Positions 12,169 to 19,263 of a stretch of DNA of 64,000 bases are shown piece after piece. This DNA comes from Octopus sinensis (lineage: Eukaryota), in NCBI RefSeq assembly GCF_006345805.1, contig NC_043001.1:33294001-33358000 (forward strand). Direction: 5' to 3'. How positions within the stretch are numbered: the stretch's first letter is position 1; every line of letters starts with the position of its first letter. The notes below the pieces were generated by a model. It made no database searches. It had not been told where the DNA came from and saw only the letters and a program-made list of their open reading frames with translations. The translations under genes and the position numbers were made by a program.

Positions 12169-12379
12169 AGTGTACATTACCAGCGGAACTTGGATCCTGC
12201 ACATTCCCTCCCAGTAAACGCTGGTATTTCGATATAAAATCCGAAACCTGTAAGAAGTTTTGGTATACATGTGGAGGAAATAGTAATAATTTCCTGTCTC
12301 GCGAAGAATGCATTGGAGTGTGTACAAATGTTTGTAGTTTGCCTGTAGTAATTGGAACAGGTTGGGGAACTATGAGAAG
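12169..12379 (+). CDS. Kunitz gene 1 exon 2: Kunitz domain 1 (CTLPAELGSCTFPPSKRWYFDIKSETCKKFWYTCGGNSNNFLSREECIGVC) plus N-half of domain 2 (TNVCSLPVVIGTGWGTMR)
   Basis: Acceptor tttgtatttttAG at 12167-68, donor AAG|GTAAAG at 12380. Open 211 nt, phase 1 to phase 2, with Kunitz motifs (six Cys, R-W-Y-F, GGNxNNF). Same length as gene 2 exon 2. Confidence 0.92.
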
Positions 12380-13092
12380 GTAAAGCATTTTCTTTTAAAT
12401 TCAATCCGTTCAGTTTTCGTTTTTATTTGTTATTCATTTTAAAATGATTTTGTGGTTATTTATATCGATAAAATTCAAAGTATATGTAAACTTGAAGGGT
12501 CCAATATAATTAAATGTCATATATACATACATACATACATACATAAATGCATACATATATACATGCACATACTTAAATACGTGCATACATACATACTTAC
12601 GTACGTACGTACGTATGTGTGTGTGAGGGAGAGGGGGGGAGAGAGGGAGAGAGAGAGTAAACTTTAGAATAGTTCAAATAATTTGGGGACATAATTGACC
12701 TGTACAAAGATATTTCTACTGCGATTTTGATATCTGATACTGAGGAGAGCACTAAGACCTCATAAAGGCATCTACTGATCCACAGGGGGCCTTACGAACA
12801 TTTTATGGTGTGTTCAGACCTATTGTCTATAGCGAGTATTTCTTCCATGGGAAAACGCAATGGAAAAAATAGTAATAAATTTGGGGGGACGCCCGAGCTG
12901 ATTTTGCCGACTTTACACAATCCGACTACTACTTATTTAATTCAAACCTGGTGAGATTTTAACGACGAATTTACTCAATGAAATATCGAAGCTGTAACGA
13001 TTTTGTCTTATTACCCACCTTTAAAGTGCTTTGGTTTACTAATTCTGCCATTTTACGACGTTTACAGTAATACTGCTAATAATTTGTTAATA

Positions 13093-13568
13093 TAGGCGCA
13101 GGAGTGGCCATAGGCGCAGGAGTGGCCATGGGCGCAGGAGTGGCCATAGGCGCAGGAGTGGCTGTGTGGTAAGTAGCTTGCTAACCAACCACACGGTTCC
13201 GGGTTCAGTTCCACTGCGTGGCATATTGGGCAAGTGTCTTCTACTATAGCCCCGGGCCGACCAATGCCTTGTGAGTGGATTTGGTAGACGGAAACTGAAA
13301 GAAGCCTGTCGTATATATATATATATGTGTGTGTGTTTGTGTGTCTGTGTTTGTTCCTCTAGCATTGGCTTGACAACCGATGCTGGTGTGTTTACGTCCC
13401 CGTCACTTAGCGGTTCGGCAAAAAGAGACCGATAGAATAAGTACTGGGCTTACAAAAAGAATATGTCCCGCGGTCGAGTTGCTCGACTAAAAGGCGGTGC
13501 TCCAGCATGGCCGCAGTCAAATGACTGAAACAAGTAAAAGAGAGTAAAAGAGTAAGAGTAAAAAGAGT
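13093..13568 (+). mobile_element. tRNA-derived SINE, family A (internal (TA)n(TG)n, AAAAGAGT tail), ending about 40 nt before the terminal-exon acceptor; also in units 2 (about 15680-16155) and 3 (about 18210-18646)
   Basis: Head GGCGCAGGAGTGGCTGTGTGG..GGTTCAGTTCC, TTGGGCAAGTG core. The 18-bp head is tandemly repeated x4 in units 1 and 2 and x2 in unit 3. Confidence 0.85.
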
Positions 13569-13609
13569 ATAATAAAACATGTCATGTTCTGTTTTGCTTC
13601 TGTTTGCAG

Positions 13610-13892
13610 ATATTACTTCAACAAAAAGGAGAATAGATGTAAACATTTCATGTGCGCTGGAAAAGGAAGGAACGGCAATAACTTTCCCAGTATCGAAAAA
13701 TGTCAAAATACATGCATGAGTATTTGTAAACTACCATTTGATGTGGCCCATGTGAGGGCGCTTTTCCGCGCTTTTACTACGATTATAAATCGCAGGATGC
13801 AGAGATTCACTTATGGAGGGTGTCTCGGAAACAGAAATAATTTTAAGACTATCCAGTATTGTCAAAAGGCATGCGGGAATTTTCAAAGTTAA
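13610..13892 (+). CDS. Kunitz gene 1 terminal exon copy a: C-half of domain 2 plus domain 3 (P1 Glu type), with three 1-nt deletions that restore the frame
   Basis: Acceptor tgtttgcAG at 13608-09, stop TAA at 13890-92. 283 nt versus 286 in copies b and c; the deletions are tt>t, aa>a and gg>g relative to copy b, probably sequencing errors. Confidence 0.8.
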
Positions 13893-14174
13893 AATATTTC
13901 CAGTTACAGGGATGTGTCATTGAATCAAAAATCAGCGAAAGGACGCTTGATTTTCTTACTGAAATTTATCTTTAAGCAAAGAAAAGAAGTTGTGAAAATT
14001 AAATCAAAATTCAACAGATTCTCCCCAATGTATGTCAGCCACCGACAAATCTTGTTCAAGACTTGCTAACAAGTTTTTTCCTTTATATTTTCAAATGTAA
14101 TTCGAATAACACGGAAAACAGTTATCTCCCTTCCCTGCTTCAGACATAGTTAAAGCAAAATGATATTTTAGATG

Positions 14175-14180
14175 AATAAA
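14175..14180 (+). promoter_or_regulatory. Poly(A) signal, gene 1 terminal exon copy a
   Basis: AATAAA inside a block (AATAAAATATATTTGTAA) that is also conserved in the gene 2 3' UTR. Confidence 0.7.
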
Positions 14181-14619
14181 ATATATTTGTAAATAATGAA
14201 GTACTGTTTAAATTCCTGTATCTTTTATGTTTTACATTTTTTTGTATATAATAAATAGTAAATCATATATAAAATATGATATATATATATATATATATAT
14301 ATATATATATATATATATATATATATTATATTATATATATATATTCGAGTTTAAACAGCCGAAATGCTAAGATGATCCGGTTCCCGACTGAAGATTAGAG
14401 GCTTCGAGTGACCCGTCTGTTTTTTTTTTTTTTGTGTCGTCTCTTTGTGTTTTTGCGTTCTTGTCCACTTTGTAATTTATATTTTATATTTAATTCTATA
14501 CACATATATATATATATATATATATATATTATATATATATATATATATATATATCTATATATATATATATATATATATATATATTATATATATATATATA
14601 TATATACATACATAAATAT

Positions 14620-16482: not shown

Positions 16483-16763
16483 AATATTTCCAGTTACAGG
16501 GATGTGTCATTGAATCAAAAATCAGCGAAAGGACGCTTGATTTTCTTACTGAAATTTATTTTTAAAGCAAAGAAAAAAGTTGTGAAAATTAAATCAAAAT
16601 TCAACAGATTCTCCCCAATGTATGTCAGCCACCGACAAATCTTGTTCAAGACTTGCTAACAAGTTTTTTCCTTTATATTTTCAAATGTAATTCGAATAAC
16701 ACGGAAAACAGTTATCTCCCTTCCCTGCTTCCACATAGTTAAAGCAAAATGATATTTTAGATG

Positions 16764-16769
16764 AATAAA
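16764..16769 (+). promoter_or_regulatory. Poly(A) signal, terminal exon copy b
   Basis: Same conserved AATAAA block. Confidence 0.7.
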
Positions 16770-17467
16770 ATATATTTGTAAATAATGAAGTACTGTTTAA
16801 TTCCTGTATCTTTTATGTTTTACATTTTTTTGTATATAATAAATAGTAAATCATATATAAAATATGATATATATAATATATATATAATATATATATATAT
16901 ATATATATATATATATATATATATATATCGAGTTTTAAACAGCCGAAATTGCTAAGATGATCCGGTTCCCGACTGAAGATTAGAGGCTTCGAGTGACCCG
17001 TCTGTTTTTTTTTTTTTTGTGTCGTCTCTTTGTGTTTTTGCGTTCTTGTCCCACTTTGTAATTTATATTTTATATTTAATTTCTATACACATATATATAT
17101 ATATATATATATATATATATATATATATATATATATATATATATATATATATATATATATATATATATATATATATATATAATATATATAGACATATATA
17201 TAAAACTGAGAATGTGTGTCTGTCTGTCTGTCTGTTTCCCTAAAACTTGAGAACTACACAACCAATTTCATTCAAATTTTACACATGCCTTACTTAGGGT
17301 CCGGGGAGTGTCATCGGCAAAAAGAATATTTTTACTTTTTGCCTAACGCGAGCCCACAGCAATATCATATCTTCTCCACTACGAATCACCCTGTTATTTA
17401 ATACGTACGTACACAAACATCAACAAAACGAATAGTGCTGGAACACTCCCATCAAAGCACCTGTCAG

Positions 17468-17529
17468 GTGTGTACAAATGTTTGTAGTTTGCCTGTAGTA
17501 AATGGAACAGGTTGGGAAACTATGAGAAG
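17468..17529 (+). pseudogene. Duplicated 3' fragment (62 nt) of gene 1 exon 2 at the start of repeat unit 3
   Basis: Identical to 14895-14956 and preceded by the same filler. Confidence 0.85.
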
Positions 17530-18687
17530 GTAAAGCATTTTCTTTTAAATTCAATCCGTTCATTTTTCGTTTTTATTTGTTATTCATTTTAAAATGATTT
17601 TGTGGTTATTTATATCGATAAAATTCAAAGTATATGTAAACTTGAAGGGTCCAATATAAATAAATGTCATACATACATACATACATACATAAATGCATAC
17701 ATATATACATGCACATACTTAAATACGTGCATACATACATACTTACGTACGTACGTACGTACGTATGTGTGTGTGAGAGAGAGAGGGGGAGAGAGAGGGA
17801 GAGAGAGAGTAAACTTTAGAATAGTTCAAATAATTTGGGGACATAATTGACCTGTACAAAGATATTTCTACTGCGATTTTGATATCTGATACTGAGGAGA
17901 GCACTAAGACCTCGTAAAGGCATCTACCGATCCACAGGGGGCCTTACGAACATTTTATGGTGTGTTCAGACCTATTGTCTATAGCGAGTATTTTTTCCAT
18001 GGGAAAACGCAATGGAAAAAATAGTAATAAATTTGAGGGGACGCCCGAGCTGATTTTGCCGACTTTACACAATCCGACTACTACTTATTTAATTCAAACC
18101 TGGTGAGATTTTAACGACGAATTTACTCAATGAAATATCGAAGCTGTAACGATTTTGTCTTATTACCCACCTTTAAAGTGCTTTGGTTTACTAATTCTGC
18201 CATTTTACGACAGGCGCAGGAGTGGCCATGGGCGCAGGAGTGGCTGTGTGGTAAGTAGCTTGCTAACCAACCACACGGTTCCGGGTTCAGTTCCACTGCG
18301 TGGCATATTGGGCAAGTGTCTTCTACTATAGCCCCGGGCCGACCAATGCCTTGTGAGTGGATTTGGTAGACGGAAACTGAAAGAAGCCTGTCGTATATAT
18401 ATATGTGTGTGTGTTTGTGTGTCTGTGTTTGTTCCTCTAGCATTGGCTTGACAACCGATGCTGGTGTGTTTACGTCCCCGTCACTTAGCGGTTCGGCAAA
18501 AAGAGACCGACAGAATAAGTACTGGGCTTACAAAAAGAATATGTCCCGGGGTCGAGTTGCTCGACTAAAAGGCGGTGCTCCAGCATGACCGCAGTCAAAT
18601 GACTGAAACAAGTAAAAGAGAGTAAAAGAGTAAGAGTAAAAAGAGTATAATAAAACATGTCATGTTCTGTTTTGCTTCTGTTTGCAG

Positions 18688-18973
18688 ATATTACTTCAAC
18701 AAAAAGGAGAATAGATGTAAACATTTCATGTGCGCTGGAAAAGGAAGGAACGGCAATAACTTTCCCAGTATCGAAAAATGTCAAAATACATGCATGAGTG
18801 TTTGTAAACTACCATATGATGTTGGCCAATGTCGTGGCTATTTTCCGCGCTTTTACTACGATTATAAATCGCAGGAATGCAGGAGATTCACTTATGGAGG
18901 GTGTCTCGGAAACAGAAATAATTTTAAGACTATCCAGTATTGTCAAAAGGCATGCGGGAATTTTCAAAGTTAA
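18688..18973 (+). CDS. Kunitz gene 1 terminal exon copy c (...CKLPYDVGQCRGYFPRFYY...), domain 3 P1 = Arg
   Basis: Intact acceptor at 18686-87, 286-nt open exon. Identical to copy b except for 7 nt in the reactive loop. Confidence 0.85.
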
Positions 18974-19257
18974 AATATTTCCAGTTACAGGGATGTGTCA
19001 TTGAATCAAAAATCAGCGAAAGGACGCTTGATTTTCTTACTGAAATTTATCTTTAAGCAAAGAAAAGAAGTTGTGAAAATTAAATCAAAATTCAACAGAT
19101 TCTCCCCAATGTATGTCAGCCACCGACAAATCTTGTTCAAGACTTGCTAACAGAGACATTTTTCTTTATATTTTCAAATGTAGTTCGAATAACACGGAAA
19201 ACAGTTATCTCCCTTCCCTGCTTCAGACATAGTTAAAGCAAAATGATATTTTAGATG

Positions 19258-19263
19258 AATAAA
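19258..19263 (+). promoter_or_regulatory. Poly(A) signal, terminal exon copy c
   Basis: Same conserved AATAAA block. Confidence 0.7.

Follow-up and report, generated by a model that had tools for sequence, protein, structure and literature searches.

In insect serpins such as Manduca sexta serpin-1 (exon 9) and Pteromalus PpSerpin-1, tandemly duplicated exons encoding the reactive-centre loop stand behind a constant protein body, and the variation among them is concentrated around the P1 residue (PMC10513286; for Manduca serpin-1 this paper cites Jiang et al. 1994 and 1996). Another related system is the three-Kunitz gene TFPI, whose alpha and beta isoforms part after the second Kunitz domain by alternative splicing (PMC9314982, PMC11426987). 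In our full-text literature search, we met neither a Kunitz gene whose exons swap its loop nor any account specific to the octopus gene reported here. This gene lies on the forward strand of a 64,000-nucleotide (nt) stretch of Octopus sinensis DNA (contig NC_043001.1, positions 33,294,001 to 33,358,000), hereafter called the window, and it carries three tandem copies (a, b and c) of its terminal exon. With slightly better than even confidence, the locus was interpreted as a tandem segmental duplication, young and specific to its lineage, within a secreted three-Kunitz inhibitor gene that evolves fast; the messenger RNAs (mRNAs) of this gene would by default end in copy a.

The coordinates of the gene and of the duplicated units are collected in the table below. 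Exon 1 translates as MLRLIHWLFLICVGLGVRAGHHPDHHDIPS and carries a G/GTAAGT donor; it lies 5 kb upstream of exon 2, outside the coordinates given in the initial annotation. Exon 2 was found in the phase that had been claimed for it, two bases completing the split codon before the frame continues as CTLPAELGSC...GTMR, and by tblastn it is 64% identical to residues 29-100 of the Octopus bimaculoides protein XP_014769044.1 (P0002). When the products of exons 1 and 2 joined to each terminal exon were compared with Pfam PF00014, three matched stretches were obtained, with a score of 160 bits for the products ending in b or c and of 129 bits for the one ending in a. Domain 1 contains six Cys with the spacing of its relatives (8/16/6/12/3), domain 2, like that of the octopus relatives, is devoid of CysII and CysIV, and domain 3 of copies b and c shows the canonical spacing 8/15/7/12/3. 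The product is 66-67% identical to the SmCI-like proteins of O. sinensis and O. bimaculoides (E values of 1e-66 to 1e-68). Judged by its sequence, the gene is a member of a secreted three-Kunitz-domain inhibitor family, whose relatives are named 'SmCI-like' by NCBI, and its product is a predicted inhibitor. An extra, unpaired Cys was also noticed in domain 2 (KHFMCAGKG; 13650-13665 and the equivalent positions of b and c). It is absent from all relatives and, as it is present in all three copies, it must be older than the duplication.

Downstream of exon 2, a single donor (12379/12380) faces three identical acceptors, the same 25 nt (tgttctgttttgcttctgtttgcag) preceding positions 13610, 16197 and 18688. 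In the three-way alignment, no difference between a, b and c was observed over 13511-13721, so that the identity extends over more than 100 nt upstream of the acceptors. The TAA stop codons are found at 13890 (a), 16480 (b) and 18971 (c), and the polyadenylation (poly(A)) regions, including the contexts of the AATAAA signals, are nearly identical. The initial annotation had described three complete terminal exons. Identical acceptors, a TAA codon and AATAAA are indeed present in all of them, but copy a is not intact as assembled. Likewise, the domain 3 loops proposed for b and c were recovered (VGPCEGAF and VGQCRGYF), whereas the GPCEGAF assigned to copy a is encoded only in another frame.

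Table. Features of the three-Kunitz gene and of its tandem units in the window
Feature	Position	Strand	Description and evidence
Exon 1	7095-7185	+	start codon, signal peptide MLRLIHWLFLICVGLGVRAG plus HHPDHHDIPS; phase-1 donor G/GTAAGT; tblastn against P0002
Exon 2	12169-12379	+	Kunitz domain 1 and first half of domain 2; donor GAGAAG/GTAAAG, phase 2; translation, Pfam PF00014
Terminal exon a	13610-13892	+	domain 3 scrambled in frame from about 13743 to about 13801; frame back before stop
Terminal exon b	16197-16482	+	intact; domain 3 loop GPCEGAF, P1 Glu, derived state
Terminal exon c	18688-18973	+	intact; domain 3 loop GQCRGYF, P1 Arg, ancestral state
AATAAA	14175-14180 (a); equivalents at 16764 (b) and 19258 (c)	+	second AATAAA about 75 nt further in each copy
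Unit A	12318-14894	+	begins inside the real exon 2; anchors, three-way alignment
Unit B	14895-17467	+	about 0.5% substitutions relative to A; anchors, alignment
Unit C	17468-19819	+	about 1.1% substitutions relative to A and B; 70-bp intron deletion; homology ends near 19819
Pseudo-exon-2 fragment	14895-14956; second copy 17468-17529	+	intact donor copies 14956/14957 and 17529/17530
Junction filler	14812-14894; near-identical copy 17385-17467	+	83-nt fragment of a retrotransposon-like open reading frame between unit end and unit start
24-nt patch	18816-18840 (c); 16325-16349 (b); 13738-13761 (a)	+	contains all seven coding differences between b and c

Copy a differs from b and c by three single-base length differences, located near 13743 and at 13797-13800. 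As a consequence, in the frame set by splicing copy a reads ...CKLPFDVAHVRALFRAFTTIINRRMQRFTYGGC... and domain 3 loses CysII and CysIII; the in-frame translation up to the recovery of the frame contains ...CMSICKLPFDVAHVRALFRAFTTIINRRMQRFTYGGC.... Because the ratio of insertions and deletions (indels) to substitutions in the array is high and suggests residual consensus errors, this damage may be an artefact of the assembly, for which we consider the chances to be about even.

The units were delimited by means of anchors and a three-way MAFFT alignment; the 2.58-kb array was not reported by Tandem Repeats Finder, for which the longest period was 500. They follow one another head to tail with a length of 2573-2577 base pairs (bp), about 2.58 kb each. 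Every unit comprises 62 nt from the end of exon 2, the donor that follows them, a 1.23-kb intron containing a repeat similar to a short interspersed nuclear element (SINE), the terminal exon, the 3' untranslated region (3'UTR) and about 0.6 kb of flanking DNA. The statement that the duplicated units lack an intact exon 2 was thus borne out, only its last 62 nt being retained in B and C. The initial annotation had overlooked that these fragments also carry copies of the exon 2 donor, each of them situated about 780 nt past the preceding AATAAA.

In both junctions, an 83-nt filler stands between the end of one unit and the start of the next; where it adjoins exon 2, a GTGT microhomology is found. 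The filler shares 84% identity with a portion of a retrotransposon-like open reading frame (ORF) in the orthologous O. bimaculoides locus (L001), and no copy of it follows unit C. Because this adjacency of unit end, filler and exon 2 is novel and could not have been invented by an assembler, at least one duplication must be real. For the same reason, the mis-assembly of the haplotypes of a single true copy was ruled out: it would not bring together the 3' flank, a retrotransposon fragment and the middle of exon 2. Since the two junctions are 99.6% identical to each other, the third copy arose either by homology (unequal crossover) or through the assembler.

In order to compare the units, microsatellites were excluded and obvious artefacts of indel shifts were taken out by eye. 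Substitutions then amount to about 0.5% between A and B and to about 1.1% between A or B and C, which is about a tenth of the intron divergence between the two species (about 10%). In addition, 15 short indels were counted among the units, nearly all of them changes in homopolymer length, or about one for every three substitutions. Two of the units possess a structural variant of their own: B contains a 10-bp insertion, and 70 bp are deleted from C. Along the alignment, B agrees with C at sites 12352, 12367 and 12413, the first three that vary, and with A at most of those that follow. This hybrid pattern is predicted both by a real crossover hybrid and by an assembly chimera of a heterozygous two-copy array.

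Several repeats were observed within and around the units. The intronic SINE-like element occupies 13096-13300, with copies at 15685 and 18212, and is preceded by 18-nt GGCGCAGGAGTGGCCATR repeats; the 70-bp deletion of unit C is located there, and no transfer RNA was detected by ARAGORN in this SINE-like repeat. A 148-bp element (19671-19964) is found once at the end of A and of B and twice in tandem, with 88% identity, after C, at the 3' breakpoint of the duplication. Long (CT)n/(AT)n microsatellites at 11540-11960, 14270-14345 and 14495-14630 flank exon 2 and the 3' ends of the units, and the length of the (AT)n tracts varies among units.

The specificity of canonical inhibitors is dominated by the P1 residue, for which Arg suits trypsin-like enzymes. 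Trypsin and chymotrypsin accept an acidic residue at this position very poorly, yet such residues do occur naturally. Copies a and b share one loop sequence. Between b and c, seven substitutions fall within the 24-nt patch, where about 0.26 would be expected at the rate of about 1.1% found elsewhere (Poisson P of about 1e-8, or about 1e-6 when corrected for windows). From b to c, they change four residues (BPTI numbering), namely F9Y, P13Q (P3), E15R (P1) and A17Y (P2').

With O. bimaculoides as the outgroup, two changes are placed on the a/b lineage: CGT became GAG, replacing Arg by Glu, and TA became GC, replacing Tyr by Ala. The ancestral C-R-G-Y-F persists in copy c, which has a derived change of its own at P3; the P1 residue of domain 3 is Arg in all four cephalopod relatives. 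The a/b loop was carried by none of 26 related octopus proteins, and GPCEG-type loops recur in domain 1 of a neighbouring paralogue and in several multi-Kunitz proteins from distant invertebrates. Within the window, no gene-conversion donor was detected: no match of at least 9 nt to the derived loop exists outside a and b, where only chance 8-mers were seen, and the 11- and 14-mers of the loop are confined to these two copies. A comparable multi-base cluster in the non-coding 3'UTR (14070-14075) also arose on the a/b lineage. Through the change from TA to GC, a perfect direct repeat was formed, GCGCTTTT-CC-GCGCTTTT, at 13757-13780 (a) and 16345-16368 (b), which is compatible with templated mutation. 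Together, the 3'UTR cluster and this templated-looking repeat weaken a purely selective reading of the loop. An old duplication, homogenised everywhere but in the loop, was also considered and appears less likely, as the patch contains unchanged codons without synonymous differences.

Upstream, the real exon 2 has acquired two derived non-synonymous changes, Asn to Ile at 12352 and Glu to Gly at 12367, the latter at the P1-equivalent position of domain 2, and the exon 2 fragments of B and C retain the ancestral bases at these sites. Such a pattern would fit expressed copies that change in their loops and unexpressed copies that fossilise an earlier state, and copy c may be a relic of this type.

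The orthologue of the gene is XP_014769044.1, with the same exon boundaries and with both flanks collinear. In the available assembly, which has gaps, the O. bimaculoides locus shows a single terminal exon between collinear flanks, and no array is seen there. The signal peptide is identical at 20 of 20 residues (7095-7185 against 10001-10090 of L001), with synonymous changes only. For the propeptide and mature region, identity falls to 64-68% at the protein level and to 80-84% in coding DNA, and the introns are about 88-90% identical between the species; the cysteine framework is conserved in both. The ratio of non-synonymous to synonymous rates (dN/dS, Nei-Gojobori) was about 1.3 over the mature part, exon 2 giving a value of about 2.0 and the terminal exon one of about 1.0. 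A frozen signal peptide followed by a hypervariable mature part is typically met in secreted inhibitors and toxins that undergo diversifying selection, and this gene conforms to that pattern.

The anatomy of the array, its junction, the polarity of the changes and the single copy in the sister-species assembly are shown by the sequences compared; from them we infer the following order of events and use of the copies. A non-homologous, microhomology-type join would have captured the 83-nt retrotransposon fragment and duplicated a 2.58-kb segment that starts 62 nt before the end of exon 2 and runs on for about 0.9 kb beyond the stop codon. The third copy would have been added by a homology-driven event, or by the assembler. 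The distal copy c would then have kept the ancestral P1 Arg loop, while the a/b lineage gained the P1 Glu loop through clustered multi-base changes, and copy a, as assembled, would also have undergone the three length changes of one base by which domain 3 is scrambled. The proximal copy a is expected to be the default because it is transcribed first and neither the acceptors, which are identical, nor the nearly identical poly(A) regions set the copies apart; b and c would accordingly be silent or minor read-through products. The architecture permits an alternative choice of last exon, but we lean against a regulated switch, which the arrangement of signals would make less probable.

Several points weigh against this interpretation. 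The O. bimaculoides locus contains runs of N at 13525-14756 of L001, in intron 2, and at 16365-16455, 55 nt past the aligned 3'UTR, and because of these gaps it is possible that an array was collapsed in that assembly. If copy a is both the default and broken, the main product would be defective, which would argue for the use of b or c, or for gene decay. The coding differences between b and c, seven in number, are without exception non-synonymous and lie at primary positions of the binding loop (9, P3, P1 and P2'), a pattern that selection on two used exons would also yield; with a dN/dS of about 1.3, an adaptive change of the loop is plausible. Finally, the exon 2 donor copies beyond the poly(A) sites of a and b might damp these sites and favour read-through.

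Three other explanations had to be weighed. The one that we regard as improbable, though the most serious of the three, is an inflation of the copy number by the assembler: the true array would contain two units, E-type then R-type, B would be a chimera built from the first unit of the other haplotype, and many of the one-base indels would be errors. The divergence of about 0.5% between A and B is small enough, we believe, for an allelic difference, the first 100 nt or so of B resemble C and the remainder A, as a path switch would give, and the many homopolymer indels, at about one per three substitutions, are accompanied by error-like patches in B as well (16560-16576). However, a real unequal crossover predicts the same hybrid, the units have their private structural variants, and the novel junction means that at least two copies are real. 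A second explanation, which is very unlikely in our opinion, is that the scrambled copy a is the exon in use and that the locus is becoming a pseudogene after a disruptive duplication. The state of copy a, the unpaired Cys of domain 2, the dN/dS of about 1.0 in the terminal exon and the lack of a protein model for this gene in the protein collection, where the RefSeq protein of its neighbour is present, are in agreement with decay. Nevertheless, the length changes of copy a resemble homopolymer errors, the open frame and the Cys framework of domains 1, 2 and 3 (in b and c) are kept in both species, the signal peptide has changed by synonymous substitutions only, and the dN/dS of about 2 in exon 2 is above the neutral value.

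It is unlikely, in our view, that the locus is a nascent alternative-last-exon system, in which the donor at 12379 would be joined to a, b or c so that constant domains 1 and 2 are combined with a domain 3 bearing P1 Glu or Arg. The signals needed are present, with a shared donor, three identical acceptors and a separate stop codon and AATAAA for each copy; b and c complete intact three-Kunitz products that differ exclusively in the binding loop, and the gene evolves fast, probably adaptively. Moreover, the alternative C-terminal exons of serpins arose by tandem exon duplication (PMC10513286). On the other hand, no transcript or protein is recorded for the gene, the array is very young (0.5-1.1%), the O. 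bimaculoides assembly shows just one copy, copy a is scrambled, and signals so nearly identical provide nothing for regulation to act on and favour the proximal exon. In the short time since the duplication, c could have held the ancestral loop without selection, the loop difference can be accounted for by clustered mutation on the a/b lineage with c left as an unused relic, a similar mutation cluster occurs in non-coding sequence, and the assembler may have inflated the number of copies. That a newborn system already supplies secreted Kunitz isoforms with an ancestral, trypsin-type P1 Arg or a P1 Glu in domain 3, which would be the first case of loop-exon switching in Kunitz inhibitors, caught at about 1% divergence from its origin, seems quite doubtful. 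A recent segmental duplication with default use of copy a therefore remains the interpretation that we prefer.

No annotated coding sequence or assembled transcript was found for the gene in the protein collection and the ORF look-ups. In a collection of 5.8 billion proteins, no protein more than 67% identical to the product of exon 2 and copy b was detected, though the RefSeq protein of the neighbouring gene is present, and neither P0001 nor the exon ORFs of b and c gave a record when looked up as exact sequences. A transcript-like contig of 1057 nt (L002, Logan SRR3401912) encodes a 200-residue tri-Kunitz relative (P0004, 57% identical), and no such contig was found for the present gene. As judged from general knowledge of splicing and polyadenylation, the donor copies located past the poly(A) sites of a and b could turn a (or b) into a long internal exon joined to the next acceptor, in which case the stop codon of a would lie upstream of exon junctions. 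Splicing of exon 2 to a cryptic acceptor at the junction (cag/GTGTGTAC, 14895) was discarded, since it leads to a stop after 10 codons.

Should the extra exons be used, the locus would show the birth of a serpin-style specificity switch and extend this principle to Kunitz inhibitors: plain segmental duplication would supply a spare reactive loop, the P1 residue of which is then altered in few mutational steps. If they are unused, the exon 2 fragments would record the state that preceded two amino-acid changes in the expressed exon 2 and, with c silent, this copy would record the state before a radical Arg to Glu change in domain 3. Such a record would be set in a gene whose mature part outpaces its introns while the signal peptide stays frozen. 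The locus also calls for caution, as near-identical tandem units in long-read assemblies require read-level checks before isoforms are claimed.

A neighbouring gene in the window is convergent and occupies 31812-40723 on the reverse strand. Its exons (40723-40658, 36848-36636 and 32096-31812) translate with 100% identity to O. sinensis XP_029636494.1, named 'carboxypeptidase inhibitor SmCI isoform X2' by NCBI, isoform X1 differing just by an N-terminal extension. This neighbour is a paralogue, 66% identical, with a P1 Glu in domain 1, a P1 Arg in domain 3 and a single terminal exon. Elsewhere in the window, an ORF for a mariner-type transposase (PF01359; 41370-42134, forward strand), a reverse-transcriptase fragment (PF00078; 58625-59272, reverse strand) and a very AT-rich block near 53 kb (53200-54000, GC content of 25%) were noted. 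An ORF at 9039-9632 (forward strand) has a KPDIVV motif and no Pfam match; a similar PDIVV motif appears in translation in the transposable-element sequence of L001 that matches the junction filler.

Among the systems compared with the locus, the octopus SmCI-like proteins (XP_029636494.1 and XP_014769044.1) belong to the same family. A common signal peptide, three Kunitz domains with a domain 2 devoid of CysII and CysIV, three exons and the genomic neighbourhood are shared with them. These relatives possess one terminal exon with a P1 Arg in domain 3, whereas two or three are present here and the proximal two have the Glu loop sequence, out of frame in a as assembled. Vertebrate TFPI resembles the octopus gene as a three-Kunitz gene with possible variation of its end after domain 2. 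However, in TFPI beta the third Kunitz domain and the basic tail are exchanged for an unrelated C-terminus with a glycosylphosphatidylinositol (GPI) anchor, so that neither a loop swap nor recent duplicates are involved.

As in the insect serpins, tandem paralogous loop exons follow one constant half of the gene (three copies, two of them intact), and the differences between b and c are concentrated in the reactive loop. The fold and the mechanism of the inhibitors are different. The insect arrays are older and consist of many well-diverged exons whose use has been proven by complementary DNAs and proteins, while the octopus array is a candidate with copies 98.9-99.5% identical outside the loop and one of them scrambled. 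The alternative exons of serpin-1 are internal and share a common 3' exon; the octopus copies are complete terminal exons, each with its own poly(A) signal. The arrangement also corresponds to a filler-type tandem duplication followed by unequal crossover, with the same head-to-tail units, filler, microhomology, hybrid middle unit and absence from the sister-species assembly. Structurally, nothing distinguishes it from a duplication of this type, and it is unusual only in the part that was duplicated, a terminal exon encoding an inhibitory loop. The locus thus appears as a tri-Kunitz family member with a recent tandem segmental duplication, and as a candidate for reactive-loop switching.

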